Shown here in pieces: positions 26,849-62,883 of a DNA stretch of 64,000 nucleotides. Each line of letters starts with the position of its first letter. Within the stretch, counting starts at the first letter, position 1. The translations under genes were made by a program, and so were the position numbers. Source of the stretch: Gracilinanus agilis (Eukaryota); NCBI RefSeq assembly GCF_016433145.1, contig NC_058132.1:163346438-163410437 (forward strand). Direction: 5' to 3'. The notes under the pieces are model-generated. The model made no database searches. It was not told the DNA's origin and saw only the letters and a list, made by a program, of their open reading frames with translations.

Positions 26849-27685
<837 letters not shown>

Positions 27686-39499: not shown

Positions 39500-42330
39500 G
39501 AAATGATGATAGAATGGGAGGGAGAGGTATCTTCATCTCAAAAAGTCTAAAGGGGGCTCTCTATAATAGCAACATATTCAACATTTTCTCATACTTGGAC
39601 ACTACTATTTGAGAAAGGACAAAGATAAGGTCAATGTAGAGGTAGAAAATATCAACCTATTACTGCTAGTTTATAGGGCTGCTAGATAGTATTATAAAAG
39701 CTTTGATCCTAACAGCAGTCATATACCCACAGCTTGCTATATCTTATTTTTTCCCCCATCCTGCAATGTTTTTTACACATCAGTCTGGTAAACTGAATGG
39801 CTCCATCTAGGAAAGTAGACCGACAAACATTTCCAAAGGGCTATATTAGAGAATCCAAAATAGCTACAATGGCACCCTCCATTCCTTTCCCCTTCAGTCC
39901 TAATGATATTGGCAAACTTGCTTAAAAGCGATCTTAGCTTCAGTTTGAGATCATCTGTGGAAGCACACCTCCCAGAGGATTATTCCTGTACTCTCCACCT
40001 GCATGACCACTAGGAGTCTCCTTAGCCCAGGGACTGAGATGCCCAAAGCCACAACCCACATGAGTCTATCAAGATTACCTCAGACCTAATAAATCAGTCC
40101 ACCTTCTCCCTCCCTCCACTTACCCCAATAGAATATCTCAATTAACTCTTCTCTTTTTGTAACACCGCTACCAAATCCTTTTTTGCATCTTCCATTTGCA
40201 AGAACTATATTGCATGTTCTACATTTCAGACAGTGCATATTGGCTGCATAACAGAAAACAGGATGCAAATACTAAGCTGCCAAGTGGCTCTGGTTGTTAT
40301 GGAAGATTCCTTTAGCTGGAAAGCTTTTGGGGGGTAAATCTGGGACCCCATTCTCTGCGACCAACCCTACCCAGCTGAAACCATGGGAAGGGACAAGCAG
40401 AGAGGAGGACAGGAGATGACTGAAGAAGACTCACAGTAGAAGAAGGCACAACTCCCATTCTCTACCAGTGGCTTCCTTGTTAGTTCTAAGGGCAGTAAGC
40501 CCAGCCTCAGTTCCAGACTCCTCAAAATTAGCACAGTCTGGGAGGAAAGACTTAGTAGTCCTCCAATGGGTGTGGAGAAGGGCATTAGTATCTAGAGAGA
40601 AGAAAATAGTTCCTTGTAGTCACTCCTTACCAGACTTAGAATATTTACTTGAATCCTTTACATTTGATTCCCAAGACCCAGCCCATATGAGGCAGAGAAG
40701 AGAAATGCCTAAGAGAAGCTTGTCCATCTTCTATCAGTGTCCTAGAGTAGACCTTGGAGGGAACTGAGAGCCTCTCTAATGTCTGATGCCCCATGGGTAG
40801 CTACTCCTTTCCACCAATAGGAAGGTGCTTATGATCAATGTGGTAGGACCATGGCTGATCAGCTGATACTTAGTAGGAGGCAAGGAAACATCCCTGGGGC
40901 TTATAGAAGAGGGTGGAGAACACAATCTGAAAGGCCTAATTCCCTAGTTCATTTTGTATCCCTTATCATGTCCTAACAGTAGAGGAGAGCTAACTTCATT
41001 TGGAGCCAAAGGGTAGACTTCTCTTATGAATTACTAGATGTGATTAGTTTCTTGCAGTCAAGCTATCTAAGGAAGGGGTATGGGGAATGGCTTCAGAGGG
41101 TTTATGATCTCTCATTTTTTTTTCTCCTCTTAGGGATTTTAGTATCAGACTTTTCCCTAGGAAAGAAATTCGGTTTTGGAGTCAGTAGGCCGGAGTGAAG
41201 ATGAATTGTTTTCTCTACTGGATTCCTTTTGGGCAAATATGGGAAACTTTAGTGAGCCATTCATTTTTCTTCTTAATGGATGGATATCAAGAGTGATTGC
41301 CCTACTATAGTAAAGCTTTTGCTCCAGAAAGTTTTAATTTCTTGCATATGGGTTCAATATAGTTGGAAATGTGTCATCAGGTTTTCTTTTCTCAGAATTT
41401 TAAAAGTCCTGTTAAGAGAAATTCATAGCTTTTGGTCCTAGTTCCATTGGAAATATTTCAAGGATAAGATCTTTATTTTCTATTTCTTATATGGTTCCCC
41501 TCCTTCATATTATCTCCCATAGTCTTTACATACATAGATCACTTGGCAAAAACTGGTCAATTATTTACTGACTGATTGTTTGACTGTAATTGACATTCCT
41601 GAAATAAATTTTAATATAGGTTTCAGAGGTATTATAAGGTACAGTATTGTCATGACCTTTTCTGAAAGTTTACTCCTGCTAACTGTCTTCCTCAACTCAT
41701 TCTCAGCATAGCTCAGCCTTGATGAACAAATTAAGAAAAGACAACAATTTCATTAGCCTCTTTAGGGATAGCTAGCACAGAAAAACTAAGATGGCATGAT
41801 TTCTAGAGAAACAAACTTTTTTCTTTTGTTCTAGATAGGCTCTCTATATAGATCACATTTACTAGCTGATTGTCTAGCTCTTTTTCTTCTTGCATGTATA
41901 TAAACAAAGACCAGATGTCAAAATGAAATTATTATACAATCTTGTTTTCCATTTCTTTTATTTAAATCATATAGAGATAGGTGGTATGATGGATAGAGAC
42001 CTGGCCTTGAAGTCCTGGGTTTAAGTTTTATATTTGATATATACTAGCAATGTAATGTGACCTTCAGAAAGTCACTCAATTTTCAGTGCTACAGGGCCTC
42101 TTGGAGAATAAGATCCAGAGAGTATGCTTTGGTATTTTCCTGGGTAGAAGAGTTTTTTCACTTGGAAGTTCCCTAACTTAATGAAATCACATATTTAGTC
42201 CTTATCTCCAGTTTCTTATATTAATCATCAAGTTTATTGAGTGCTTCTTTGTACAGTATTGTTCTAGAAAACACATGAAATACAAAAGAAGTTTTATAAA
42301 CATTGCCCTAGCCACACTCTTAGAAAGAGT
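39500..42330. repeat. Segmental duplicate A (paralogue of 56236-59460)
   Basis: Long colinear matches, e.g. 40400-41460 versus 57290-58420. Confidence 0.92.
39682..40727 (-). pseudogene. PATE/ACRV1-like Ly6 three-finger pseudogene (exons 40631-40727, 40466-40537, 40124-40243, 39682-39806)
   Basis: Signal peptide MDKLLLGISLLCLIWAG; C4 to G, C5 deleted, premature TAG at 39709-39711 after CC, C10 to Y; 45-nt mini-exon reduced to 4 nt. Confidence 0.88.
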
Positions 42331-43539
42331 ATAAGTATAATGCAAGTTTGGCAAGAGCAAAGGAAATATTTAGAAAAAGTGCTTTGAAAAATTTGAGGAC
42401 AGAGAGAATTCAGCTTTGGGAACAAAAGTGTGCATCAAGGCAGTAGGGGGAAATAAATTTCACATTGTCCTTATTGGATTTACTTTTAGGAGGTATATGT
42501 AAGAATATAATAAAAAATTATAATATAAAAGAACACATGAAAAGTTAGTAAAAAGTATATGTAAAGTGTTACTCATATTTAAGGGAGGAAAGCTACAGTA
42601 AGGGACTTCTAAACAAACACAATTTGGTAATGCAGTTGCTGAGAGGTGAAGCTCCACTGGCTTTGATCACTCTTAGGAGAGGGGAGACCCTGGTTGTGGT
42701 TCCAGAGTAGAAAGGCAAGCTGAAGCTTGAAATCCAATTGGGATCTTCTATTATTTTCTTTAGCATTTAGAAATGATAATCGTTTACTAGGACATAATTC
42801 AGCACATAATTATATTACTTTGTGTTAGAGTGATTACCTAGGGATTATTTCAGCCAAAGGTAAATGTCAAGAGCTACTAAAAGGCAAAGATAGTGAAAAT
42901 AAAAGGGAAGGTCTTTAACTAAAAAATAGACATTCTACATCTTAGAAAGACTTGACATTTTAATAGGTCAATTACATGTGAAAAGACCAATTTTATCCCT
43001 CCATATTCATCTGTATAAGATCCCCAGTGAGACTGGGAAGTGAGATTGATTGTTATATTTGAAGGGATTTTTGAATCAGGGAAGGATTATTGAAACATGA
43101 AAGGTTGGTCCTATTCCACCTTGCTTGGAGATGACAAAGGACCTCAGAACTAAGGCTTTGAAAATAGTCAAAAGGAAGCAGCTTCTATGAATTCTAAACA
43201 TGACAAATCTAACCTATTACTGCTTAGAAAAAATTACTCTAATTACCCAATTTTGTTCCTAAAATTTCCACAGTCCCAACAAACCTTTGTCTGGCTCCTC
43301 AAAGCCTTACAAATTTACAAAGGAAATAGCTACTTTTTAATTTATCCTAATATATTTTGTGCATTGTCATAACCAATTCACCCCAAATATTTATAGTACA
43401 AATCATAGATCATCTGTGAGTAATGCAAGAAATCAAATTTAGTTTTTTATGCTAATATGAGAATTCTGAAGTAACATTGTGGTTGCCGACTTAAAGATAT
43501 TATAACTTAAGTAAAAAATGACTTTTAGTAGCTTCATTT

Positions 43540-46200
43540 ACCAAGAGTAAGATTTAAATTAAATGTCCAATACTTGAAGTATTATATTTTATAAAGTTTA
43601 CTATCTAACAAAATAGAACCACGTGACTAAGTTTTTCTGCCTGCTCAAAAAGTCCATTCCACCAAAGCTGCGACAGGAAGACAAGAGAGGAGAGATGTAA
43701 CCACAGAATTTATAGCCTGTCTAAATCAGCACATAACAATAGGAAGAGAGTGGGGTGCTGGGAATTGTTTTTTTTAGGGTAATAGATTCTAATTACACAA
43801 GAGGTAGAAAGAGTGAAAATGGGAAAATGTAGCTAAAGAGACAGGTTTTAACAAGCCTACTAGCCCTTCTCTGGTGAAGTGAGGCTCAGCCCCTAAGGGG
43901 CTTCCCCACATCTAGTGGTGTCTTCAGCTAGAATTCCACCAATGCAACCTCCTCCAAAGCCAAAGCAGAAATCTCAGGAACCAGTCTCTCCAGAAGCCAG
44001 GAAAAGAAGGCCAGTTACTTATCCACCCAAGACAAACTCCAAAGGAGAAGAACAAAAGCTAATTCCCAAGGCAAAGTCCTCTAACACCAAAGTCCAAATG
44101 AGAAGATCCAGGAGCAAAAAGTCCAAGGCCAAAGGTTGAAGGTTCCCTGGACAGGAGGTTCAGGACTTTTTATAGTCCTTTTTCCATGTCACTTCCTGTC
44201 CCTTCTTCTACTTTACAGGAACCAATTTCAGTCTTTTAATTTGCTCAGCACTGCCCACGGGTAGGGCAGTGGTCTCTGGAGTTGTCACCCACTTTAGCAC
44301 GTGACTTTGGAATTCTCTTACTTAGTGTTAAATAGGAGTTTTTAAGTTTTAGATTAATTTAAAAGTTGCTGATTGATAAGACAAAAAGTTTGATTCACTA
44401 TTCATAGTAAAACAGTATCAAATTCTAACAAATTGTTTCTAAACATACATTTACATTTAAACACATTTACAATCTTAGCAGAATCATGTTTGCACAAAGA
44501 TACAAGTTTTGGTAACAGTCAATATATCACAATTTAGGTCAAAACTAAAAAAAAAACCTCCTTTAACAACATTCCAAATTATAAAAGGGAATCCTTTATT
44601 CTCTTTGCCTAGTTGGAGCTAACACTTTGGTTTCCCTCACTAGATTGTGAAGATAGGATTAACTCTCTTTTGTCTACCTTTTGATTGAATCAACAAAAGC
44701 TTGAACTAGGCAGAGAAGCTTGCAAACCACTTAGGTCAGTGATGGGCAAACTACGGCCCAGAGAGCCAGATGTGGCCTCCTGAAATGTTCTATCTGGCTG
44801 CACATTATTCCTAATCTGACGAATACAATGAGTAGGATACAATACAATGAAACTTCGAAAGAGTTGCTTTAGAAACAGACTGACAGATGAGCATTTCCTT
44901 TCCTTTGGCCCCCTCTTTAAAAAGTTTTCCCATCACTGACTTAGAGAATTCATACCTTCAGAAACTCAATCAGCCAGGAATCTGTGAACCCTTTTGATGA
45001 GTATTCACTCCTCCAGAAGAGGAGAACTGGTTCCCACAAACACTGTCCCCTGGGCAGTGCTAGACAATTTCGAAACTATGATTGGCCCCTGTGAAAATAG
45101 GAAGAGAAAAGAACTCACTATAAAAGGCCCTGAACTTCTGGAGCTAAAAAAGGAAGTCAACTCCAAGAAGGAAGTATTATTCAAGAAGGAGTTGGACTTC
45201 AAGAGGGAAGTCAGCTTCTAGAAGAAGGTTGGCTCAAGGAAGAAAGTCGGCCTCAAGAATCACCTTCCACTCGAGTCTGTTGTGAGGAAGATTAGTTATT
45301 AAGTATTAAGGATGGACCTAGCAGGAAGGACTAGAGCATTCCAAGATGGAATGAAGGAGCAGGAAGTTGCTTGTGCTCTGAGAGAGACTCCATTAGTGGT
45401 TGGCACAAACTGTTGCTAGCCCTGGGAGATCTCAGAGTCTTAACTCTGGATGACACCCTGCATCCAGACTCCCTGGGATCCTGAGTGGTGGTGGTTTCTA
45501 ACAAGTGGACAAGACTTACAGAGCAGCACCAAGTGGAGGAGGAGTTTGGGATCTGGTGGACAGCATCTCAAGCATACTCTCTCTACTTGGATACCTTGGA
45601 CCACTTTGGCTCTTGGCATCCTGAGATCATCTGTGGACCATGAGAAACCCTCAAAGCCACCAACAGGCCCTTTAGCTGTGCTGGTCAAACCTGGTTAGAA
45701 CCAGGTTTGAAGCTGCCTTCCAGTGACTCCATTACTGCTTCTTTATGCCCAGCCTGGCCTAGGTCAATTAGTATTAGAGAAGTCAAGTCCTCCTCTTGCC
45801 CTGTGGTTTTGCCCATTTAGGTTTTAGTGTAGAATTCCCTATCCCACCTTTATTTAGTTGAACATAATTAAAACTGTTAAAACCTTTTACCTTGCCTGCT
45901 GGTTTCAAAGACTCTGGCCTAGTGGTGACAGTTGGCCAACAGCCTTTCTTGTCAGTTAGGAGCAGCTTAGCTGTGTACTCTGGTCTCCCTATTCTGGTCC
46001 TGTCTCTCCTTCAACCCAGTGTGTGTACCCACAACCATTTAGATTATATTTTAACATCCCTGGTGCCCATCCCTTTTACAAGTCATTGGCTTGACCTGCC
46101 TCTTGGAGGGGCCTTGGGTGAGTGGATAGCTGGCTTTCCCTTCCTGTATTCTGGAGAGAGTTTAATTGAAGGTCAACAAGTCCTAGCTGAATTGAGCACC
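43540..46200. mobile_element. Cluster of LTR/ERV remnants
   Basis: 43570-43700 matches the LTR at 53880-53990; minus-strand TATA/ETS LTR-like segment near 44170; integrase C-terminus-like remnant at about 45950-46150. Confidence 0.55.
44737..44938. mobile_element. hAT MITE (CAGTGATGGGCAAAC TIR)
   Basis: TIRs cagtgatgggcaaac / gttttcccatcactg; TSD acttaggt/acttagag. Confidence 0.88.
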
Positions 46201-46218
46201 AGAGCAATATTTAGTTAG

Positions 46219-47375
46219 TGTAATATCATTTCTGATATGCAAAATGGAGAGCAGGATGAGTGACACTCAGCAGTTTAGAATTTGGAACCAACCTAGATTG
46301 CCTTGAGCCAGCAAGGAGAAGCAGTTACTTGGCAGGACTATAAAAGGGAGAAATTTGAACAAGAAGCTCTCTCAATCTTGAGAAGAGACTTGGGGAGGTT
46401 GGTTAGGATTTGGGTAGGCCAAACCAAATCATCTTAGGTTACCTGCATCCTGCTCCAATTGCTACCAAACCTTCAACTTCTGTGTAAAGCTGTGCTATAC
46501 ATTCAATCAACTGAACATCAAGGAAGAAGTAACGTCAATACTCAAAATAATCTGGTTCAGGTCAAGGTGCCTGACCTAGCCAGGTTGCTACAGAGAGGAC
46601 AAACCTCTCCAGCTGACAGTCTCAAACCTGATTACCTTTAATGGACAACACCTAATCATCAGTAGTTTTAGTCAAGCTTTCCTGACACCTCTTTCCTTCA
46701 ACCTTGTTCCCTTTCCCTAAGTTTATTATTAAATTCTAAACTTAGATGAATGTCATCATTGCCCTAAGGATCATTGATTATATCCTTGGGTATCTGAAGG
46801 AAAGGGAGTGCTCAAACTAAAGTTAAGTCACAGTCAATAGCATTTGCCCTAAGCATCATTGATTATATCCTTGGGTATCTGAAGGAAAGGGAGTGCTCAA
46901 ACTAAAGTTAAGTCACAGTCAATAGCATTATCCATCAGCTTTGAAGCCAGGATAAGCTATCATAGAAGCTGTGTGATCTTACCCAACAGCTTCTTATCTG
47001 ATTACTTATTCCTGGGACACTATTGTGTTGGAGCTATGTGTTTAGTTTAGTTTCAAATATTTCTGTGGAGTCTTGGGGTTCACTACCACAAATTGGTGCT
47101 CACCTAGACATTCTCGCTCTCACTCAACTCAGGTCTTCATACCATCTGAGGACCTTGGGCCATCTTTTTATTAGCTAACAACATCAACATAACATTAGAA
47201 AGGCTAATGCCTTCTCTACCCTTTTGTATTTCTCTGATTTCACTCTTTCCACCTTTTTGTAAATAAAATATATTAAAGTCATTTCGACTTTGAGCAATAA
47301 TACTTTGAATCTGCAACCACCACCGTTATTTATAATCATATATTTTAGCCAAATCATTAAAATTTAATCCTTAAA
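46219..47375 (+). mobile_element. Solo LTR with an internal ~85-bp tandem duplication (46757-46929)
   Basis: TG start, TATAAAA near 46319, AATAAA near 47261. Confidence 0.65.
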
Positions 47376-47506
47376 AAATCCTTAGTATAGGTTCCATCTC
47401 AAGTTTATAAATTTTAAAACTTAAAAACTTAAAAAAAAAACCAATCCCAGTGGTCATTACATTTCTTCAAAGCCTGGTGGAATGCATATAATTTATAAGT
47501 CTAAAC

Positions 47507-47699
47507 CAGTGATTCCCAAAGTAGGTGCTACTGTCCCCTGGTGGGTGCTGCAGAGATCCAGGGGGAGTGGTGATGGCCACAGGTGCATTTATCTTTCCTA
47601 TTAATTGCTATTAAAATTAAAAAAAATTAATTTCCAGGGGGCCAAGTAATATTTTTTCTGGAAAGGGGGCAGTAGGCCAAAAAAGTTTGGGAACCACTG
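47507..47699. mobile_element. hAT MITE (CAGTG[G/A]TTCCCAAA TIR)
   Basis: TIRs cagtgattcccaaa / tttgggaaccactg; perfect 8-bp TSD gtctaaac. Confidence 0.93.
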
Positions 47700-47899
47700 G
47701 TCTAAACTAACTAGGCCTCTGGAGGGTGGCTTTATTCATTAGAACCTCTTTGTTTCCCTCAATCATCACATGGCCATTTCTTCTTTTTCTGTCTAAGACT
47801 AATGAGGACTCATTCATAACCCCTCCATCCTCCCATAAACACGTTGTAGGGTTCAGATTTGAAATCACACAGACTTGGTAGGGTGTGCTAACCACTAGA

Positions 47900-49740
47900 C
47901 TTCCTCCAACACTTAATTTCCTCCTTCTGTTAAAATTGTAGCAGCAGTTGGAGGCCCCTCTATCCTGCCCCTATTCCTATGTCCTGCCCATACTTGAGGA
48001 TTGATTAGATTCTCCTCCTCCACTGTTAGAGGAATTGCCTGAAGGGTCTGGCTATTATTCTGAGACTTTTTTACACTCAAATACAGGTTTGGTTTAATAA
48101 TTCTGTCTCTTTCTATAAAGATCATTGATTGAGTCATAGGGGCAGAAAAGCCCTCTCTCTGTACCCTAGCCACAATGAGCCTCTGATTGCTCAGCTTAAT
48201 TCCTTGGGGTAGTGAAATGGGACATTATTTTACTTCATTCCTGTCAATCAAGAAGGTTGTTTCTACCTCCTGGCTTCCCACCTGTAAGGTTATCAAGGGC
48301 TCTGGGTGGGGTTCCAGGAGCCCCTGACCTTGTCAGTCTTCTGCTTCTGAGAAAGAGTAAATCCTATTTTCTTTCTGTATCTTGGGGCCTTCCCTTCTTA
48401 CTGTCTGCCTTACTCTAGCCCTCTTGTACAAAGTTGTATAAAGTTTTCTTCCATCTGTCCTCTCTCTTGACATAAATCATCTGAGCCAATTGTAGCAATT
48501 CGTCAAGGGGTTTCATCATCCAGTCATCTGTGTTTTGGAAACAAGTCTTTAAAAGATCTGGCACACCAGGCTCAATCAGATCTATACAGGATACTTGTTA
48601 AATGCCATCCTTAATCTACCTACAAATTCAGTGGGAGTCTTTTCCTCACTCTGATTGATCTTATAGACTTCATTAGGATTCTGGCTCTGGGGCATTGCTG
48701 CTCTTACTTCCTGCTTTCTAAGATCCTTGCTTGTGTGGTGGACAGATTCATTGCTATTTCAGAGGGGAAATACTTGTTTCCCTCTTGATCTGTTTTGGGC
48801 TATGGAATTTTCATTATCCTAGACCTCTGTAGTAGCTAGTCTGATCTTCTCTTTCTAGAAAATTTTCCTTCTTTATCTTACAATTCCTCACTTCAGAACC
48901 ACTGAGGGGAACATTTTCATAGCCAATTCCCTTCCCTGGTGGATTTTCCCACTGTGAGCACTGCTTCAGTCCACCAGTGGGTGAATTAATCTCCTCAGGT
49001 GAGAAAGCTGCTACAGCTTCTCACTTAAGTACTAGAGGAACTATGGGAAGTAGAGGAAAGGCAGGGAGAGGGACTGGAGGAATAAGAACAGGAGCAGAGA
49101 CCTGAGCAGGACCAGAGGCAGGTGGTGCCTGGGAAACAGGAGTTGGGGGAGAAAGGACTGGACAAGGGGGCAGTGGTGGGACAGATTTGAGTGGGTCCTA
49201 AGTCTTCTCCACTTCCCCTCCTGGTCCAGAATTCTTTCCTTTCTCTCTCTCACTTTCTACCACCCTCCCTGACTTTTCTCTGACCACTGCTGCTGTTTTA
49301 TTCTCTTCTGACCTTTTCCTTAACACCAAGATCTCTAGATCTGGAAGCCAAAGAGAAGCATAAGATTTTTCTGCTTCAGTGCTAGATTTTCTCCAACTAA
49401 TTTCCCTGGTTTACTCACTCCTGTAAATCAGACCCTGGGTTACTCCTTAACCCTTACCCCCAACCTCTTGAGGTATGCTGACTATATCCCTAGTCCCTTT
49501 AAACCTGGGATAAGAGTCAATCTGGGGGTTTCCAAAAAATTATCATTTCCTCTTGTGGTCTTAGTGATTCTGCCATTGACCATAAGGTGCTATAGAGTCA
49601 ATTGTGCTGCCTGAATCCCAGTTTCAAGGACAAGCTTGGGACAAAGGCAATATGTCCAGAAGAGCCTGAGCTCTGTTTACCAAAGGTGGGAGGGAAATAA
49701 TGAATGTACAAATAGCCTTTGGGGGCATTCCCCATTAGCT
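47900..49740 (-). mobile_element. Class I (gamma-like) ERV gag-pro-pol remnant
   Basis: MGNAPKG start, Pro-rich linker, capsid-like GIGYENVPLSGSEVRN, KTPTEFVGRLR and KPLDELLQLAQMIYVKRE, protease-like TFLID, and INPQVWAGHRNRG; many stops and frameshifts. Confidence 0.8.
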
Positions 49741-50289
49741 CATAGGTCTTAGAGAGGACAATGGAGCATTGACCATTAGCCAGCACAAAGCACTCTTCTT
49801 CTGGCAGATCTTACAACAGAAAAGGCACCCCATTTCCCACTGTCCATCATGTCTTTCATGTCATAGGGTTCTGGGGGGGCTTGAGGTGAACCCCTGGAGT
49901 TTGGGACAGGCACCCTTTGTAAGAATGCAAGACTCCATAACTTTGCTTAGAAATAAAAAGAAATTTATTAATATGGAATTCATGTTGAAGTGGCTGGGAG
50001 GGCAGTGTAGATGGGATGCTGCGCTGCTACTCCCCACCCCCCTTCTAGGAGATATGTCCTGGATCTTTTATATCTTTTGTCAGCTGGGGCTCAGTGACCA
50101 GGAATGAAGTTAGGCAGGAGTGGAGGATGTTTGTTATCTGACCAGGTTTGTGTACTGAAGACACAAGGGATGGTTTTCTAGAGCTGCTGAAACTACTTAG
50201 TCTGCCTATATCATTTGCCATCAATAAAATCCCTCTGGACCATTAAAGCCTACAGAAGGGCACTTCCCCCCTACCCTGCCCTCCTAAAG

Positions 50290-50620
50290 TTCTTTTACTA
50301 CCTCAGCAAACAGTTTTATGAATCTTCTGGTTTTTGTTTGTATGTTTTCTTGGTGGATGGAAGCCTTCTGTGCTAGACAAATCACAGCATTTACAGTGGC
50401 AAAGCAATTGTTGGAAAAAAATTTTGTCCCTACTAGGGATACTCCCAAAGAGCTACATAGTAATAGAAGTACTCATTTTACAAGGAAAATTCAGTCACAC
50501 TTATGGAAATCATGGCCTATAGTACAAAGCTTGCATTGCCCCTATTGGTCCTAATACTCTGTGCTTGCGAAAGGGTAAGTGGATCATTTAAGATCCAATT
50601 AGGTAAACTGACAGAATATT
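50290..50620 (+). mobile_element. ERV integrase core remnant
   Basis: LLVFVCMFSWWMEAF...TVAKQLLE...ELHSNRSTHFT...LHCPY (DDE core-like). Confidence 0.8.
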
Positions 50621-50939
50621 TTTACCTTATTTGGGTTAGTTCTTCCCTCTATAAGGATAATATTAGTAAATAAGTATTGTTTTATTAGTTTAGAGATAAG
50701 AAGTAGAGAAGTTGTTAATTTCACATTTTGGCAATTGTAACCATTATTCTATGACAGTTTCACTCTCTGGGTGTGGCATTTTGGCAGTTGGCTTCTGGCA
50801 GTTGACAGAGAAGCAGGATCTTTTCTCTCTCAGGGTTAGTGTGATAATGAGATTAAACCTACCCTACCCATCTTTAGATTTAATCACCAAAGGTGAAAAC
50901 ATCTCCACTTAATTCACAAGTTGGGTGGTCTATGACCCA

Positions 50940-51637
50940 CATGTGCTAGAGTGAGTAACAAATCAGAATTTACTGACTGCCTCCTGGGCAGTCCTAAGAA
51001 AAGCATCTGTTGTGATTGGACACGTAAACTAAGAGGAAGGCACAGGAAGTGACACAAAAGAGGCCCCTTAAAAAGAGAGTTCAGTGAGTGCAGGCTCTTC
51101 TTCTGGTTTGTGAACAGGACCTGAAAGTGCTCTTCTGGTTTGTTACCAGGACTTGGAGGAACTCTGGAGCTAGTGAGACTGTTCTTAAATCTTTCCTTTG
51201 GAATTCCACGTGGTGAGTATAAAGACTGAATCTTCCTGAACTTCTCTTAAGGAACTTCCCTTTCAAAGAGACTCTGTGACTGAAGCTTTTGCTTCATACG
51301 TCTCTGAGGCTTGGCCCTCAGCTTAAGGCTTGAACTTTTCCAGTTGAGGGCTAGTTAGGCCCTTGGCTCAAGGTTTGGTCTTTTTCCGATTGAGGACTAG
51401 TTAGATCTGCTTGGGTTAAACCAGGGACCTAAGCGAATTATTTAGTTTTTCAGGTTAATTATCTTACCTTATCCTCTCTCTAAATTTCTTAATTTCTCTC
51501 TCTCATTTGTAAATAAACTTCCATAAAAGTCAATTTGACTTGAAGTTATTCTTTACTTGGGAATTGATAATTATTCAATTCCCTGGTGACAAAATCTTTT
51601 AATATTCACAAATCAAAACCCCCCTTTTCCCCCTTAC
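50940..51637 (+). mobile_element. LTR (start approximate)
   Basis: TATA-like near 51079, AATAAA near 51512, ends ccccttaca. Confidence 0.6.
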
Positions 51638-52744
51638 ACTAGAGAAGGTAACATCTTTGCCTCTCTCTATCTTTGTCTGAGTGAAAGACTTGAAAGGAGT
51701 GGAGTGTTTTCTTTTCCAACAACTGTCTTTTGTCCTTGGCTCATGCCATCTGGGTAAATTCTAAATTCTATAACTGATGATCTGTCACTCAAGTTGGTCT
51801 CCATCTTCTTCTCAGAAGTTGCCTATTACAGGAGGGATATTCCTTTTGTATCTGGAGACTAGGCAAGGATTTTTAAAAATCATCCATTTGAGTCTGCATT
51901 TGAAGCAGGGCTGGCTAGCTTTTTGTTGTTTAACATTGAGCCGAGTGAAAAAGAAAACCTCCTAGGAATATCAAGAGAAAGAACCAGTCTGAACCCCTAA
52001 GGTTTTCCAATTGATTAAAAACTGCTGGGGACAAAAAGCTTTCTTTTAGAGTTTCAAGCATGGTTTGCAACATCTTGTCTCCTCAATTTTAGCTGAATGA
52101 CAAAACAATGTACTTGGAGGCAAGGAGTTTTAGGATGCAGATGTTGGGACAGGAGACACCCCCCCCCTCCCCCCCCCCCCCTGCTAAATTGTCAGGTGTA
52201 AGCTCCTCCCCCCCAGTAGCCTAGGGATGGAGTTGGGCAGTGGGTGGGGAAGGAAACTGGAAGTTTAAATGCCTACTGTGTGCAGGAACTACTATGCCAG
52301 GGTGGTGGGAGCCCAAAGCCTCAGCTGGGGTGAAGGAGGGTGAGCCAAGGCTGTGCTGTGTTCCTGTGCTGAAAAGTGGCTAGTGCAAGTTTTAAAACAG
52401 GCTGTAGTACCAGCCACTCAGCTAGGGGAAATATATACATTACCTTCTCCTTGGAGATTCTACCCAGAGAGACCAGGAGACTCAGGGACTTGACCGTGGG
52501 AGGGAGCAGTCAGGAGACCTCAGGGAAGCAGTGGCAGGAGCAGGAGGAGAGCTGCTAGAGCCCTGAGCTTCTGGAGAGACATGGCTTCCTGGCTTTTGTG
52601 GTGGGTGGGGGTAGGCAGTGAGCCGGGGAAACTCTGAAGAGAATTCCCTGGAGGGGGAGAGGAGGAGGGAAGCCCATGGCAGGAGAAGAAACCCGGTTTC
52701 TCTACTCACTTAAAGGTTCTGAAATCCCTTCTAGTCACCATATA

Positions 52745-53032
52745 TGTAAGACTAAAAATGAATACTCCAAGTATTTAAATTTAATAGGATTTAATAACAA
52801 CAAAAGTGAGAGAGAAAGGAGTTCCTTCAGCTGAGTGAGCAGAGGAAAAAGCCAGAGACCCAGAAAACTGCTGCACTCAAGCCAAAATCAAAAAAGCCTC
52901 ACAGTATGGGTTTCAGCAAATTTATAAACAAATCCATGCCAGGGCGCAACACAGGGATGCAAGACAAGGGAACCCCAGGAAGAGTAAAGAATAGTGGGAA
53001 ATGAAGTCCCCAGGGTACAAATTTTTAAAAAC
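52745..53032. mobile_element. Short solo LTR-like element
   Basis: TGTAAG...AAACA termini. Confidence 0.45.
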
Positions 53033-53841
53033 ACACTATCTATACTTTTTCTCAAATTAAACTAAGTGTTTTATCAAACCGCTCTCCTCACTTTTGTCAA
53101 ACTCCTACCAAAAATTAAACCATAACATGTCTTAGTATCATTTCTAAGATCAAAAAGTGTCAAGAGATACACAATCAAGGTTAAATGATTGACCTTGATC
53201 AAGATTACATAGCTTGGGCATGTCTAAAGCCAAATTCGAACCCAAGTTTTCCTAATTCCAGGTCGTGCTATATCCTCTGTGCTACCTAGCTTCTATGAAG
53301 TACTTTTTTTGGTATTTTGGTGTAACACCAAAAAAGTAAATTAATTCAGGTAGAATTGTCATTTTTATTAAATTGGATCAGCCTACTCATGAGCTATTAT
53401 TGTTTTTCTAGTTGTTTAGGTCTGACTTTATTTGTTTGAAAAATGTTTTATAAGTGGAATCATATAGTTCCTAGATTTGTCTTGGTGGGTAGACTCCCAG
53501 GTATTTTATATTGTTTATAGCTATTGTAAGTGGGCTTTTTCTTCTTATCTCTTGCTATTGGGTTTTATTAATAATATAGATAAATGCTGATGACTTATCT
53601 GGGTTTATATTATTTTCTGCAACTTTGCTAAAGTTGTTAATTTTTTTGATTAGTATTTTGGATGACTCTTGAGGATTCTCTGAGTATTTTATCATATCAT
53701 CTGTAGAGTGATAGCTTTATTTCCTCATTCTATTCTAATTCCTTTAATTTTTTCTTCTCTCATTGCCATAGCTAGCATTTTTAGTACAATATTAATTGTA
53801 TTGGTGATGATAGGCATCTTTGCTTCACTCTTGGCTTCTAG

Positions 53842-54480
53842 TGTAAGAGTTAATTTAATGTGCAATAATTGTGCAAATACAAGTATTATTTTTTAAAGTT
53901 TATTATCTGACAAAATAGAACCATGTAACTAAGTTTTTCTACCTGCTCAAAATGCCTACTCCATCAAAGCCACCAATAGGAAGGAAAAAAATGCTAGACA
54001 TGGAACTCCACCAAATTACATACGTCAGCATGTAATGACAGGAAGTGAGTGGGGTTCTGGGAATAGTAGTTTTGCTGGGAATCGTAGTTTTTAGAACAGA
54101 TTCCAATTACACAATATTCCCCCCCCCCCCCAAATCCTTTGGAAGACCAGCCTCCCAATGGATCTTGTAAACATAACCAACTTATAAATTACAATAATTT
54201 ATGGATAAAAGAAAAAAGAACAAAACCAATGATTGCTGGGTGCATTGACAAAAAGCCAATTAGGGGGCAATCCCCTTTGGCATAAGAGTATACATACAAA
54301 ATAAATGTGTTACAACCCCCCACAGTTTAATTTCACTACAACTCAAAGTTCATTCTGGATCTTTTGGTGCAGTGTGAGGTTTCTGCAGGCATCTCCATGG
54401 TGACTTCTCCAAGCAGTTCTCTTTCTGGATTCTGGGAGGTAGCAAGTTTCTTAACTTATATAAAACTAGAATTTTATAGC
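53842..54480 (-). mobile_element. LTR (53842-54112) with G-rich polypurine tract and 3' internal remnant
   Basis: Minus strand: poly-G tract then TGTAATTGG...TTACA. Confidence 0.6.
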
Positions 54481-54940
54481 AATTATACATCAGCTTATCC
54501 TCATTACAGTCAATGCTTGCTTATGGTTTTATATAGATGCTATTTATCATTTTCAGGAATGTCCCCTTTATTCCAATGTTTACTAGTATTTTTAATAGGA
54601 AAAGGTGTTGTATTTTGTCAAAAGTTTTTCTGTATTTGTTGAAATAATCATATGGTTTCTGTTGGTTTTGTTATTGATATGATCAATTATATTGATAGTT
54701 TTCATAATACTAAAACATCCCTGCATTCCTGTATATAAATACAGTAAAATATTTTGTATGTAAATACAATAAAGTATGTAAAGTATTTTGTATGTAAATA
54801 CAGTAAAGTATGTAAATATAGTAAAGTATAAAGTATGAGTAAAACTCACCTGGTCATAGTGTATGATCCTTGTGATATATTGTTGCAATCTCCTTGCTAG
54901 TATTTTATTTATATTTTTTGCATCAATAATCATTAGAGAT

Positions 54941-55665
54941 TGTGAGTGAAAAATCCTTACCCCCTTATATGAGGATTAGATTTTAATGTTAGCATAGTAT
55001 TTTGATAATCATAATTGTATTTCTAAGATAGTTAAATAATGTTAGCATAAGTGATGGTTTTAGTAGGCCTTTTGTGATTATTTTAGTATAAGTTTTTAAG
55101 GTTTTGAACCAAAAGTAAAGAACTGCTTCAATATAGATAATCATTGTTAGCATAGGCCTCAGTTTTAGCCTTAGCCTTAAAATTACTATATCATGCACCC
55201 CCAGCAATTATGGTCTTGAACTTGTGACTGGGTCTTCTTTATCATAGAGGCTTTTGCCTCACATCCTAGTGTACTTCATCAGGCTTTTGCCTGGCTTGGG
55301 GGCTTGGCACCTCTCCTTATCCTGGCCATCTTAGTATACATCATCCTTGTCATCATCAGGCTTAGAGAGAAGGGTTCAGGCTCCCAACTCCCTCTTGTCT
55401 ATCAAGTGACTTCTACCAATAAGTATTTCTGATTACTTCAACCAATCCCCATCTCTCTATTTTTATCACAGTCTTAGATTATTTCACAAGTTGTGATATT
55501 CTTGGGGTATAAAAGAAGTCCTCTCACAAGGCTTGGGGTCTTTTGGTCTTGACCAGAACTCTGGCTTTATTGTGAGACTGGCCCTCTTTCAACAAACCTA
55601 TTTCTTTTTGGCTTGGAGACTTTGATTCTCTTATTTGCATTCCTGTGCTTAGAAATTACTCAATA
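54941..55665 (+). mobile_element. Solo LTR inside L1
   Basis: TGTGAG start, TATAAAA near 55509; L1 sequence resumes at about 55666. Confidence 0.7.
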
Positions 55666-55944
55666 GGATACTGGTTTATAGTTTTCTTTTTCTGTTTTTG
55701 ATTTTCCAGGTTTGAGTATCAATATCATATTTGTGTCATAAAAGGAATTTATTAGAGTTCTTTCCTCAGCAATTTCCCCAAATAGTTTAGATTATTGGAA
55801 TCAATTGTTCTTAAAATGTTTGTTAGAATTTACTTATGAATCCATTTGGCCTGGGGGCTTTTTCCTTAGAGAATTCATTGATGATTTGTTCAATTTCTTT
55901 TTCTGAGATGAGATTGTTTAGATTTTGATTTCCTTTTCTGTTAA

Positions 55945-56215
55945 TTCCCACTGGACTTTATTGAGTAGGGGAGTGAAATGATTGAATCTGTATTTTAGGA
56001 AAATCACTTTAGTGGCTGAAGGGATGATGGATTGGAGTAGGGGGAGATTTGAGGAAGGTGGATCCACCAGCAGACTATTGCAGTAATATGTGTGAGGTGA
56101 TGAGGGCCTGCAGTGGTGGCTGTGCCAGAGGAGTGAAAGGGACAGGTATAGGAAAGTTTTTGTAGAGGTGAAATTGATAGGCTTTGGCAATAGCTTGATA
56201 TTAGGAATTGTGTCC
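55945..56215 (-). mobile_element. L2 fragment
   Basis: gtagggagtgaaatgattgaatctgtattttaggaaaatcact L2 motif. Confidence 0.6.
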
Positions 56216-56524
56216 AAGGGAAGATGAAGGAATTCGGAGGGAGAGGTATCTTGTTCTCAAAAGGTCTAATTCAAGAGGAAGTTCCCTTTATAGTATGATA
56301 TATTCAAGCCATCTTCCTATACATGGACATCATGTACTATTTGGGAAGGGACAGAGATAAGGAACTGGTCAATGAATCCTGTAAGTAGGAGTAAGAAACA
56401 CCAACTTGCTAGTTGGGAGTTACGCATAGTTCAGACAGAACAATGCCAAGAGAGTTTTCATACTGAGGTCATAATTCCCTAGAAATTAATGTGTGTATGG
56501 GGAGGGATGAGAAAGTCAGGGCTT

Positions 56525-56649
56525 CTAGAGTCTATTACAGTAGTTTCGACCCAGACAGCATTGAAATTCATATTCCTTGTTATTTATCAATCTTCTTACT
56601 GTCCTGCAATTGGTTTTACATGACATCGTTGCAACTTGTAAGATTCCAT
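56525..56649 (-). CDS. PATE/ACRV1-like Ly6 protein, last exon (NGILQVATMSCKTNCRTVRRLINNKEYEFQCCLGRNYCNRL*)
   Basis: Acceptor cattttcctAG; C-x3-C-x15-CC-x5-CN LU-domain C-terminus; TAG at 56525-56527. Confidence 0.93.
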
Positions 56650-56975
56650 CTAGGAAAATGGGAGACAAACATTTCCAAGGGTCTAGATTAGAGAATTCAA
56701 GATAATTACAATGGCCATCTCCATTCCTTTCCCCTCCAGCCCTGATGATATAGGAAAATTTACTTGAAAAGCTTTTACCTTTTGTTTAGGATTGTCCATG
56801 GGAACACACCTCCCAGGGATCCCTGAACTAACAGGATTATTCCTGGATGCTCCACCGGCATGACCACTAGGAGTCTCCCTAGCCCAGGAACTGAGATGCC
56901 CAAAGCCACAACCCACATGAGTCTATCAAGATTACTTCAGACCTAATCAGTCCACCTTCCCTTTATTCCACCTAC

Positions 56976-57101
56976 TATAATATAGTTTCATAGTTGAACA
57001 GCTCTCATCGGGCTTTGCAATACAGGTACCAAAGCCTGTTTCACACTTTCCATTTTGAGTCATCATTTTGCATGTTGTACATTTCAGAGTGAACGTAAAG
57101 C
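56976..57101 (-). CDS. PATE/ACRV1-like Ly6 protein, LU exon (GFTFTLKCTTCKMMTQNGKCETGFGTCIAKPDESCSTMKLYY)
   Basis: Acceptor ttctgttatgcAG, donor GTAGGT, phase 1-1; C-x2-C-x8-C-x6-C-x7-C. Confidence 0.93.
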
Positions 57102-57217
57102 CTGCATAACAGAAAACAGGGTGTGAATGCTAAGCTGCCAAGTGACTCTGGTTGTTATGGAAGCTGGAAAGCTGTTTTGGGGAAATCTGGGGTCCCATTC
57201 TCTGCAACCAACCTTAC

Positions 57218-57262
57218 CTATGACCACACTAGTCTGTCCTTTCCCAGAATTTTTCTTCCTTG
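57218..57262 (-). CDS. PATE-like gene, 45-nt symmetric mini-exon (ARKKNSGKGQTSVVI)
   Basis: Acceptor ggtttcAG, donor AG|GTAAGG, phase 1-1. Confidence 0.7.
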   Translation of the reverse strand, partial: QGRKILGKDRLVWS

Positions 57263-57353
57263 CTGAAACCATGGGAAGGGACAAGCAGAGAGGAGGACAG
57301 GAGATGACTGAAGAAGACTCACAGTAGAAGAAGGCACAACTCCCATTCTCTAC

Positions 57354-57425
57354 CAATGGCTTCCTTGTTAGTTCCAAGGGCAGTAAGCCCAGCCTCAGTT
57401 CCAGACTCCTCAAAACTAGCACAGT
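57354..57425 (-). CDS. PATE-like gene, candidate 72-nt exon (DCASFEESGTEAGLTALGTNKEAI)
   Basis: Acceptor ctttcctcccAG, weak donor TG|GTAGAG, phase 1-1, open frame. Confidence 0.45.
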
Positions 57426-57518
57426 CTGGGAGGAAAGACTTAGTAGTCCTCAAATGGGTGTGGAGAAGGGCATTAGTATCTAGAGAGAAGAAAATAGTTC
57501 CTTGTAGTCACTCCTTAC

Positions 57519-57615
57519 CAGACTTAGCATATTTACTTGAATCCTTTACATTTGATTCCCAAGACCCAGTCCATGTGAAGCAGAGAAGAGAAATGCCTAA
57601 GAGAAGCTTGTCCAT
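57519..57615 (-). CDS. PATE-like gene, exon 1 with signal peptide (MDKLLLGISLLCFTWTGSWESNVKDSSKYAKS)
   Basis: agaagATGG start, hydrophobic core, donor G|GTAAGG phase 1. Confidence 0.88.
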
Positions 57616-58539
57616 CTTCTATCAGTGTCCTCAGTCCTGGAGCTGGCCGACTTGGAGGGGGCAGTGGCTTTGGATATTACTTGGAGTAGACCTTGAAGGG
57701 AACTGAGAGCCTCTCTAATGTCAGATGCCCCATGGGTAGCTTCTTCTTTCCACCAATAGGAAGGTGCTTGTGATCAGTGTGGCAGGACTGTGACTGATCA
57801 ACTGATACCTTAGTAGGAGGCAAGGAAACATCCCTGGGGCTTATAGAAGAGGGTGGAGAACACAATCTGAAAGGCTCAGCTCTCTAGTTCATTTTGTATC
57901 CCTTATCATGTCCTAACAGTAGAGGAGAGCTAACTTCATTTGGAGCCAAAGGGTAGACTTCTCTTATGAATTACTAGATGTGATTAGTTTCTTGCAGTCA
58001 AGCTATCTAAGGAAGGGGTATTGGGGATTGGCTTCAGAGGGTTTATGATCTCTCTCTTTTTTTTTTTTTTCTCTCCTTTTAGGAATGTTAGTATCAGACT
58101 TTTCCTTGGGAAAGAAATTCGGTTTTGGAGTCACTAGGCTGGAGTGAAGATTATTTTCTCTACTGGATTCCTTTTGGGCAAATATGGGAAACTTTAGTGA
58201 GCCATTCATTTTTCTTCTTTCTGGATGAATGTCAAGGGTGGTTGGCCTACTATGGTAAAGCTTTTGCTCCAGAAAGTTTTAATTTCTTGCAGATGGGTTC
58301 AATAGAGTTGTAAATGTGTCATCAGGTTTTCTTTTCTCAGAATTTTAAAAGTCCTGTTAAGAGAAATTCATAGCCTTTGGTCCTAGTTCCATTGGAAATA
58401 TTTCAAGGATAAGATCTTTATCTTCTGTTTCTTTTAAAATTATTTTTTTCTGGACTATACATGTATTATCATGTAAAACATTTCATTTTTATATGTGAAT
58501 AATCTATAAAAACAAAACCCCAAACACATACCCAAATAG

Positions 58540-58644
58540 AAATATGGAATATTTCACAAATTTGCATGTCATTCTTGAGCAGGGGCCATGCTAATCTTCT
58601 CTGTGTCCTTTCAATTTTAGTATATGTGCTGCTGAAATGAGCAT
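58540..58644 (-). pseudogene. RNU6: U6 snRNA retropseudogene, fused to an L1 3' end (about 58434-58539)
   Basis: Minus strand matches U6 (...gcagcacatatactaaaattg...cagagaagattagcatggcccctg..caaga atgaca...ttccatattt) with mismatches; TSD ttatcttct(g/a)ttt. Confidence 0.92.
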
Positions 58645-60490
58645 TTATCTTCTATTTTTTTATATAGTTCCCCTCCTTTATCTTATCTCTTATAGACTTT
58701 ACATACATAGCGGGTCACTTGGCAAGAACTGGCCAACTGTTCACTAACTGGAGTATAGGAGGTTATTAACATTGCATGACTAGAATTGACATTCCTGAAA
58801 TTAATTTTAACACCCTGGGACTTCTTGGAAGTATTATGGGAAGTCATAGTACTATCATTGCCCTTTTCTGAAAGTTTACTCCTGCTAAATGTCTTCCTCA
58901 GTTCATTCTCAGCATAGCTTAGCTTTAATGAACAAATTAAGAAAAGTTAACAATTTTATTAACCTCTTTAGGGATAGCTGGTATAGAAAAGTGAAATGTC
59001 ATTTCTAGAGAAACAAAAATTTCTTTTTTCTTTTGTTCTAGATGGGCTTTCTATAAAGACCAAGCATATTGCCTAGTCATCTTTTCCTATTTGTGGGCAT
59101 ATAAAGAGAGACCAGATGTCTTGTTTTCCATTTCTTTTACATAAATCATTAAAAAGTAGGTGGTGTGTTGGATAGAGAACTGGTCTTGAAGTCATAGGTT
59201 TGTTTCACCTCTAATATGTACTGGCAATGTGATCTTGGTAAAGTCATTTCTCAGTGCCCTAAGCAACTCTCTTAGATAATAAGTTCCAGAGAACATAGCT
59301 TGGGTGCTTTCCTTTGTAGAGGGAATTTTTTCACCTGGGAGTTCCCTAAGTTAATGAAATCATAGATCCAGTTCTTATCCCCAGTTACTTATATAAATCA
59401 CCAAGTTTATTTAGTATTCTTTGATCAACATTGTCTTAGAACATAAAAGAAATACAAAAGAAATTTGAGATATTGTCTTATCTACATGTTGTGTATAGTC
59501 CACAGTGCTCTGAATGTATGCAGTTAGTATTTGTTGAATAATTTCTACTTGTCTTTGAGTACTTGACAATGTGCTTGGAAGCTTCTCCTGGCTCTCTCTG
59601 CTACTTTGGGCCACCAACAGAGACAGCCTTCCCCTTCTTCCAACTCAGCTCCAGCTTCTGCTGGTTCCTCACAGCAGTTGCTGTCTGTTCATAGGACAGC
59701 TCACATTATGTATACTACCTCTTCCCCAGGAGGAAGCTTGCCAGTGTCAGATGTGCATCTATTTGATGGTTGTGATCTTACAATGAAAATTTATATCTCT
59801 ACCAAGTTTTTTAACCATAAGAGGTAAATGATTTTAATTTCTTTTGAAATAAGCTCTCATATTTTTCTTAAGCCTTCTGACTTTTTTCCTTATTTTGTAT
59901 TTATGTGACTACTTTTGTAGCTACCTGCAGCCACAAATTAATATATTCATGTGTTGACACCTGAGAAGGGAAGTTAGAAACTGAGGGAAATGGGTGAAGG
60001 GGATAGAGAGAGAGAGGTGGGGAACAGAATAAAGGAAGAAAGACTCAGAGATGAAGGGTTCAACAACATGGGCTCCAGCATGCATGCTCCTCTGATGGTG
60101 GAAAAAGAGAGAGCGAGCTATACATGTCCCCGATCTTTTATTGGAGAATCAAGGAATGGGGAATGGGAGGAAGTTAATGATCGTGTGACATGGCATATGA
60201 TTTGACATTGGCTTAATTGACAACCACAAGATCAAAGAGGAGGAGGAGGTTAATCAAACATATGACCTGATAGGGAATCTGGTCTGTTAAGGTAGGAGCT
60301 AGGACCCTGAGGCAGCTAATATCCTGCCCAGGAATTCTCTTGACCTTTGGACTGTAGGTCTGGAGAGTGGTCAGAATTAATAGAGTACCAATTAAATACA
60401 TTGATCAAGAAATAATATGACCATGAGTTTGGTACATGAGCACATAGGTTACAATATTAATACTTTCAAGATTAGAATATACCTGGGATT

Positions 60491-62403: not shown

Positions 62404-62612
62404 TTTTTTCTTTTTCTTTTTTTTTTTTTTAAATTTTAAATCCTTAACTTCTATGTATTGACTTATAGGTGGAAGATTGGTAAGGGTAGGCAATGGGGGT
62501 CAAGTGACTTGCCCAGGGTCACACAGCTGGGAAGTGTCTGAGGCCGGATTTGAACCTAGGACCTCCTGTCTCTAGGTCTGGCTCTCAATCCATTGAGCTA
62601 CCCAACTGCCCC
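62404..62612 (-). mobile_element. Young SINE1
   Basis: Near-consensus; TSD atcactgcatttct. Confidence 0.93.
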
Positions 62613-62883
62613 AATCACTGCATTTCTATTAGTAGCAGAGTCTATTACATTTGATTGTCCCATGATGTTTCACTTTCTGTGTATAGTGTTCTCCTGATTC
62701 TGCTCATTTCATTCCACATCAGTTCATGAAGGTCTTCCCAGTTTTTATAGAAATCATCTGGTTCATCATTCCTTATAGCACAATAGTATTCCATCACCAT
62801 CAGATACTACAATTTGTTTAGCTATTCCCCAATTGATGGACACCCCTTCCTTTTCCAATTTTTTGCCACTACAAAAAGCATAG

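Follow-up and report, generated by a model that had tools for sequence, protein, structure and literature searches.

How can the protein-coding exons of two tandem gene copies come to differ far more than the introns and promoter that surround them? This question is raised by a 64,000-nucleotide (nt) stretch of the Gracilinanus agilis genome (contig NC_058132.1, positions 163,346,438 to 163,410,437; the whole stretch is hereafter called the window, and all coordinates are counted from its first letter). Two minus-strand genes of the Ly6/uPAR (LU) type, here termed copy A and copy B, lie ~17 kb apart in this window, near HYLS1 and a PUS3-like gene. An initial annotation had described the three-finger exons of these paralogues as diverging far faster than the neighbouring introns, and had proposed positive selection on the LU surface, gene conversion homogenising the promoter, signal exon and introns, or both, together with some decay of one copy. 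On the evidence presented below, the locus is probably an old tandem duplication that was partly homogenised by recent interlocus gene conversion, with an island at exon 2 and the 3' end spared.

Divergence between the two copies

Comparison of the window with itself returned one duplicated unit, copy A 39505-42294 against copy B 56223-59466, on the same strand. Neither tblastn nor cysteine-pattern scans of the window revealed a third LU gene—A and B were the only ones found. Copy B (56525-57615, minus strand) comprises three GT-AG exons in consistent phases, with a spliced open frame of 444 nt and a product of 147 residues, and copy A (39682-40727, minus strand) is a dead copy. The exons of the two copies are as follows.

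57519..57615, minus strand: copy B exon 1; ATG at 57615, signal peptide, 97 nt, phase 1 end, GTAAGG donor after 57519
56972..57101, minus strand: copy B exon 2; 130 nt, AG acceptor and GT donor, encoding the LU domain's N-terminal half with 5 cysteines
56525..56741, minus strand: copy B exon 3; 217 nt, encoding the LU domain's C-terminal half with 7 cysteines and ending in CC-x5-CN-RL-stop
40631..40727, minus strand: copy A exon 1; open, with 4/97 differences from copy B, 4/4 of them non-synonymous
40120..40243, minus strand: remnant of exon 2 in copy A; 65% identity to copy B, with a 6-nt deletion and other residues in place of two framework cysteines
39682..39899, minus strand: remnant of exon 3 in copy A; 70% identity to copy B, frame shifted near 39821 by a 1-nt insertion, and an in-frame stop right after the CC pair

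Without two framework cysteines and without the terminal CN, copy A does not carry the LU cysteine framework. The two lost framework cysteines, the frameshift and the premature stop bear out the earlier suggestion that pseudogene decay has contributed to the divergence of this copy.

The two copies were aligned globally with MAFFT (A 39500-42300 against B 56220-59470, minus strand), and the alignment was scored segment by segment. Starting from the 5' end, A/B identity was 80.8% in the distal 5' flank (74% by BLAST; Kimura two-parameter (K2P) distance 0.23), 94.5% in the promoter, 95.9% in the signal exon (exon 1; 4/97 differences), 98.4% in the 5' part of intron 1 (4/257) and 89% over the last 119 nt of this intron before exon 2. 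LU exon 2 itself was 65.3% identical (43 of 124 positions differ; K2P 0.47). Identity then stood at 88.6% over the first 35 nt of intron 2, at 93-96% in mid intron 2—where a 98-nt piece, B 56851-56948, holds 4/98 differences—and at 74.7% over the last 79 aligned nt of that intron. The whole coding part of LU exon 3 was 70.0% identical (65 of 217 positions differ; K2P 0.39), and the 3' flank 74.4%. In the Rfam search, the conserved 98-nt intron piece matched no RNA family, a U6 copy described below being the sole match.

The hand counts of the initial annotation agree closely with this alignment. Its 4/97 for the signal exon and 4/98 for the intron segment beside the LU exon came back unchanged, its 42/120 for exon 2 became 43/124, and its 49/125, which covered part of exon 3, became 65/217 over the whole coding part; the distal flanks, estimated at roughly 70-80%, gave the values above at both the 5' and the 3' end. 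The claim built on these counts, that the LU exons diverge faster than their neighbours, stands for one exon and falls for the other. Mismatches reach 34.7% in exon 2 against 9.4% in the adjoining intron sequence (p=7e-9), and the corresponding values for exon 3 are 30.0% against 25.5% in the touching intron and flank (p=0.3). Exon 2 is thus the only true diverged island within similar sequence; exon 3 is not an island.

The unevenness of divergence along the locus goes far beyond chance. The longest run of identical A/B positions measures 143 nt against a permutation mean of 41 and a permutation maximum of 83 (p<0.0005); together with the exon 2 contrast, this confirms under proper alignment the non-uniform pattern seen by eye. 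A penalised-likelihood segmentation, blind to exon positions, led to the choice of a five-block model with identities, from 5' to 3', of 80.5, 94.9, 64.9, 95.0 and 71.5%. Its breakpoints lie at A 41505, at A 40243 (the first base of exon 2), at A 40109 (10 nt past the exon-2 donor) and at A 39963 (63 nt upstream of exon 3). The blocks, and the U6 copy at their 5' edge, are listed here.

58645..59470, minus strand: unconverted old 5' flank, copy B; partner A 41490-42300, 74-81% identical
58538..58644, minus strand: full-length retro-copy of the U6 small nuclear RNA; Rfam RF00026, 96.5 bits, E=1e-23
57102..58436, minus strand: homogenised tract, 5' part, copy B; includes 51 nt (57632-57682) and 41 nt (57221-57261) absent from A
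40244..41489, minus strand: homogenised tract, 5' part, copy A; promoter, exon 1 and intron 1, partner B 57102-58436, 94.9% identical
56805..56961, minus strand: homogenised tract, 3' part, copy B; first two thirds of intron 2, partner A 39964-40109, 95.0% identical
56220..56804, minus strand: unconverted old block, copy B; 3' flank, exon 3 and the final 63 nt of intron 2, partner A 39500-39963, 71.5% identical

In this arrangement the block edges fall at heterologies, namely the U6 insertion, the 41-nt indel, exon 2 and a 16-nt indel. The U6 copy lies inside a 208-nt insertion present in B only (58437-58644), exactly at the 5' edge of the homogenised tract; it is likely to be a retro-pseudogene whose heterology served as a barrier. 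Within intron 1, identity steps from 98% to 89% at the 41-nt indel, and the 3' edge of the tract coincides with the 16-nt indel. Moreover, the divergence of exon 2 spills into its introns: outside a perfectly kept 18-nt acceptor, 8 of the 24 nearest intron positions differ (p=3e-5).

Silent divergence and short-read contigs

Non-synonymous (dN) and synonymous (dS) divergence between the LU exons of the two copies was estimated by the Nei-Gojobori method. Exon 2 gave a dS of 0.34 and a dN of 0.49 (dN/dS, or omega, 1.42), exon 3 a dS of 0.40 and a dN of 0.38 (omega 0.95), and both exons combined a dS of 0.37 and a dN of 0.42 (omega 1.12). A dN/dS significantly above 1 was not found in these exons, the proportions of non-synonymous and synonymous differences being alike (p=0.47 and 0.77). 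Positive selection on the LU surface, as put forward in the initial annotation, is therefore not supported at the LU exons: the combined omega of 1.12 is not different from 1 (p=0.47-0.77), which is the outcome that had been named beforehand as speaking against selection. A pair in which one partner drifts neutrally as a pseudogene is expected to show an omega close to 1.

The silent sites also date the exons relative to their surroundings. The LU-exon dS of 0.37 (0.34-0.40) compares with K2P distances of 0.016-0.12 in the adjoining introns and 0.23-0.33 in the flanks, and 19 synonymous differences at 65 sites (a proportion, pS, of 0.29) stand against ~5% in the tract—a six- to sevenfold excess (p=5e-10). 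Since the silent sites of the LU exons are as diverged as the old flanks, selection on amino acids cannot explain the pattern, whereas differing ages of the segments can. 'Exons evolve faster than introns' is the wrong description of this locus; the introns were reset and the exons were not.

Short-read runs from the same species and from three sister species were assembled into k-mer contigs and placed on the window. Same-species contigs reproduce copy B with 0 differences across both exon/intron transitions (56200-56919 and 56906-57291). Contig depth is ~47-49 in the similar tract against ~26-30 elsewhere, and the doubling is confined to that tract, implying that the homogenised tract exists in exactly two genomic copies. 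The B-exact contigs over the transitions, together with the doubled depth, indicate that the mosaic is no obvious assembly artefact and is present in two copies. The sole same-species contig over 57262-57631, found at double depth, carries the A-type letter at 6 of 8 A/B differences and the B-type letter at 2 of 8; this mixture reflects either bubble-popping of near-identical copies or shared variants from ongoing conversion.

Contigs of B orthologues from the three sister species could be placed on the 3' flank, exon 3, intron 2 and exon 1/intron 1. Over the 3' flank and exon 3, the sister species differ from B at 7.5-7.8% of positions, against 28.5% between A and B. Over intron 1 and exon 1, A and B differ at 6/246 positions (2.4%; B 57386-57631) and a sister species and B at 12/262 (4.6%). 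The ratio of paralogue to species mismatch therefore rises from ~0.5 within the tract to ~3.8 in the 3' part left unconverted, a contrast (p=3e-4) calculated from contig summary counts with one species per piece. Because constraint alone would hold this ratio equal everywhere, the contrast points to conversion. Among the differences listed, the sister species agrees with B at 3/4 exon-1 sites and at one intron-1 site, and sister species agree with A at four intron-2 sites; such agreements polarise single changes, not the tract.

Two further observations were made on the sister-species contigs. Just upstream of the ATG, a contig reaches 16 nt into the 51-nt stretch present in B only (57632-57682), suggesting a deletion in A. 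Additionally, a contig of 797 nt has only two 24-nt matches to the window, at 56910-56933 and 57365-57388, which are collinear, on the same strand and flank exon 2, with ~280 nt of unlike sequence between them vs 432 nt in B. This contig may derive from the orthologous exon-2 region, in strongly diverged form, or from another paralogue.

Probable partial gene conversion and its alternatives

The five-block pattern, the old silent divergence within the LU exons, the spill of the island into its introns, the likeness of exon 3 to its neighbours and the ratio contrast all support conversion. Homogenisation of promoter, signal exon and introns, which the initial annotation had offered as one of two possible causes, is thereby upheld, with block edges at heterologies, an LU-exon dS like that of the flanks, and mismatch ratios on either side of 1. 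Copies A and B would accordingly be pictured as old tandem duplicates of a secreted PATE-like Ly6/uPAR gene, with a neutral divergence of ~0.25-0.4 substitutions per site. Long after the duplication—roughly at the split from the sampled sister species, or later—one or more ectopic conversion events would have overwritten ~1.5 kb, from the U6 retro-insertion site through the promoter, the signal exon and intron 1 to the first two thirds of intron 2. Two parts would have been spared: a ~170-nt island centred on LU exon 2, and the whole 3' portion starting 63 nt upstream of exon 3. Divergence of duplication age would then persist in the LU exons amid surroundings of conversion age (2-6%), and pseudogene drift in copy A would add to the divergence of the exons.

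As to why exon 2 was skipped, its existing ~35% divergence most likely blocked heteroduplex formation or was restored as heterology, and selection would have purged any conversion that carried the dead exon into B. [quoted passage not shown]

Several points weigh against this account. The comparison rests on two sequences, A and B. At a K2P of 0.47, exon 2 is somewhat farther diverged than the old non-coding sequence (comparison with the 5' flank, p=0.0002; with the 3' block, p=0.07), so that extra acceleration of exon 2, or a separate origin for it, may be involved. Two separate tracts so closely flanking a single exon are an unusual geometry. Moreover, the direct test for paralogues being closer than orthologues within the tract is weak when taken alone (p=0.07-0.23), and no sister-species contig was found on exon 2, a hole that in itself proves nothing.

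It is conceivable, albeit unlikely, that the exon-2 island was kept or made by selection, either through diversifying selection acting against homogenisation of the ligand-binding fingers or through an ASSET-like replacement. Were this true, the locus would be a mammalian, reproductive three-finger counterpart of the venom-gene mode of conserved introns and switched exons, and the missing sister-species contigs at exon 2 would reflect real hyper-divergence between species.

The specific proposal that a conversion patch or an ASSET-like switch put the exon 2 of a third paralogue into one copy after homogenisation strikes us as improbable. It draws on the shape of the island—short (~170 nt), sharp-edged and, at a K2P of 0.47, more diverged than any non-coding block—as well as on the sister-species contig in which ~280 nt of unlike sequence separate two collinear 24-nt matches, and exon segment switching with conserved introns is known from the three-finger toxin genes of viperids (PMC2474615). 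However, the window holds no third LU gene, and no other same-species contig lies on B exon 2 at a likeness of at least 80%, which argues against a close donor. An A-type contig also crosses exon 2 at single-copy depth, and the divergence of exon 2 is within ~2 standard errors of the old baseline.

Adaptive acceleration, in which the LU loops of an equal-age or singly converted unit were subsequently driven apart by positive selection, as for snake three-finger toxins, appears improbable to us. The dN/dS of 1.42 in exon 2 would suit it, as would the about equal differences at the three codon positions (second positions being highest in exon 3), the higher mismatch of the LU exons (31.7%) than of old non-coding sequence (20.8%; p=6.5e-5), the large share of the cysteine framework, which makes up most of the conserved residues, and the male-reproductive, lineage-variable nature of PATE genes (PMC4839075). 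Against these stands the silent divergence: synonymous sites are as diverged as non-synonymous ones (p=0.77), with an omega that is the value of a dead copy. Furthermore, the intron bases beside exon 2 are equally diverged, exon 3 is no different from its neighbours, and the excess over the flanks is mostly gone once flank gap columns are counted (~29%).

We consider it very improbable that purifying selection produced the pattern, i.e., that the promoter, intron 1 and the 98-nt piece of intron 2 are conserved regulatory elements that both copies have retained ever since they duplicated. The 200-300 nt of highest similarity do sit just upstream of the ATG, and the single between-species piece for intron 1/exon 1 shows 4.6% mismatch against 7.5-10.6% in the 3' pieces; yet a dead gene would have to be almost absolutely constrained across >1.2 kb, the bulk of one intron included. 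Constraint also predicts a between-species divergence in the tract ~4x below the paralogue divergence, whereas the observed value is not lower, and the tract edges lie at indels, not at functional boundaries. Finally, a false partial likeness of the copies introduced by assembly or polishing is scarcely credible: short-read contigs do collapse both copies in the tract, and one collapsed contig mixes A- and B-type letters, but 64 differences and several indels are retained inside the tract, B-exact contigs cross both transitions and depth is doubled as for two real copies. Pure constraint and assembly artefact were both rejected on these grounds.

Copy B, its surroundings and known systems

The predicted product of copy B has a signal peptide followed by an LU domain that begins with LKCTTC and ends in QCCLGRNYCN-RL-stop, with the glycosylphosphatidylinositol (GPI) tail absent. 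The LU framework calls for L-x-C-x2-C at its start, five cysteines in its first half and CC-x(4-5)-C-N at its end, and in copy B it is complete—LKCTTC, three more cysteines in the first half and the terminal QCCLGRNYCN—with 12 mature cysteines in total. The mature domain usually has ten; the added pair of copy B lies in the C-terminal half (MSC...TNC) and, judged from its sequence, is predicted to form a sixth disulfide in the third finger. Pfam PF00021 (UPAR_LY6) matched B exon 2 alone with 25.8 bits (cut-off 24.8; E=1.5e-5), and gave no match to B exon 3 alone or to A exon 2. With a signal exon, two LU exons and a stop 2 residues past the terminal CN, copy B fits the secreted PATE/ACRV1 layout, and it fits the PATE/ACRV1 kind through its domain, secretion, exon layout and position. 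Library searches added little: B exon 3 had no match in a word-indexed protein library, the full HMMER protein-library scan returned four spurious repeat proteins only, and sequence searches of PDB with both LU exons gave no match. Language-model features placed clusters of PATE2, SOLD1-like and ACRV1 proteins at 0.83-0.86, under the 0.9 lead threshold, and serve as a lead only.

Intron 1 contains, in both copies, an additional stretch that could be spliced as an exon.

B 57356-57427, A partner 40468-40539, minus strand: candidate 72-nt exon in intron 1; open, AG/GT-bounded, 3 A/B differences

The alignment thus returns the same three differences in 72 positions that were counted by hand. This putative exon is optional and not needed for the intact frame of copy B. 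If spliced, it would keep the frame and place 24 extra residues after the signal peptide, ahead of the LU domain, in an ACRV1-like manner.

Other genes in the window include HYLS1 at 6419-7519 (minus strand), a single open reading frame (ORF) of 367 residues with an HYLS1_C domain (E=6e-39), and the exons of the PUS3-like pseudouridine synthase at 9634-10707 (plus strand), with the domain exon at 10138-10704 (E=2e-24). An RPS4 retrogene at 26894-27682 (plus strand) has an intact ORF of 263 residues with all five S4e domains. The neighbourhood of HYLS1 and PUS3 is also that of the human PATE/ACRV1 cluster. In human, PATE1-4 and ACRV1 are located at 11q24.2 in a report that is silent on HYLS1 and PUS3 (PMC4839075). 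A family of repeats resembling short interspersed elements (~200 nt, 85-93% identical, both strands) occurs at 1552-1750, 11363-11587, 15606-15819, 62421-62619 and other positions, and a near-exact (98.8%) tandem duplication of 86 nt occupies 46759-46929.

A PATE-like gene with 12 cysteines, intact yet unannotated, is now documented in a marsupial together with its dead twin. Under partial conversion, the promoter and signal exon of dead copy A would have been kept fresh by live copy B. More generally, a pattern of 'exons faster than introns' can arise without acceleration when conversion resets the neutral clock in introns and promoter while exons retain the old one because they already differ too much or would be too costly to overwrite. 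This bears on tests based on dN/dS or on intron-calibrated rates in PATE/Ly6 clusters and toxin-like three-finger families, for which conversion tracts should be mapped first.

The locus invites comparison with four known systems. In snake three-finger toxin genes, exon 1 and the introns are conserved, whereas exons 2 and 3 differ strongly, a pattern described as ASSET (PMC2474615). These genes share with our pair the predicted fold, the organisation into a signal exon and two LU exons, the similarity of exon 1 and introns, and the dissimilarity of exons 2 and 3 that nonetheless keep their cysteines. However, toxin families have many functional members and a dN/dS >1, whereas omega here is ~1 with equal synonymous divergence, and a probable conversion tract accounts for the pattern; toxins, furthermore, belong to venom, and copy B would by kind be a secreted protein of the reproductive type. 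Neither of the two marks that define adaptive acceleration is seen at this locus, as dN/dS does not exceed 1 and the dS of the exons is not comparable with the intron rate.

PATE/ACRV1 genes (human 11q24.2, mouse chromosome 9; PMC4839075) resemble copy B in encoding a single secreted LU domain without a GPI signal in three exons, and they likewise occur as tandem genes whose copy number varies between lineages. Copy B differs from them in having 12 rather than 10 mature cysteines, and no sequence relative was detected for it in the protein libraries searched. Islands of divergence under gene conversion have been described, e.g., for the GOT1 paralogues of Tigriopus (PMC3728101), where, as here, a short diverged island is embedded in converted sequence. 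Those islands are argued to mark new function; in the present case, by contrast, the partner is a pseudogene, and selection is no likelier than a mechanical barrier.

Finally, in the primate L/M opsins, exon divergence between tandem paralogues significantly exceeds intron divergence, and conversion tracts are mostly intronic (PMC3213168). Tandem paralogues and intronic conversion are common to both cases, the islands of divergence in the opsins lying at functionally distinct exons. Both opsin copies are functional, and selection against homogenisation is backed there by population and multi-species data, whereas the present pair has one dead copy and one true island exon. With these differences in mind, the locus works like the opsin case and adds a new, clear and well-delimited instance to a phenomenon already known.

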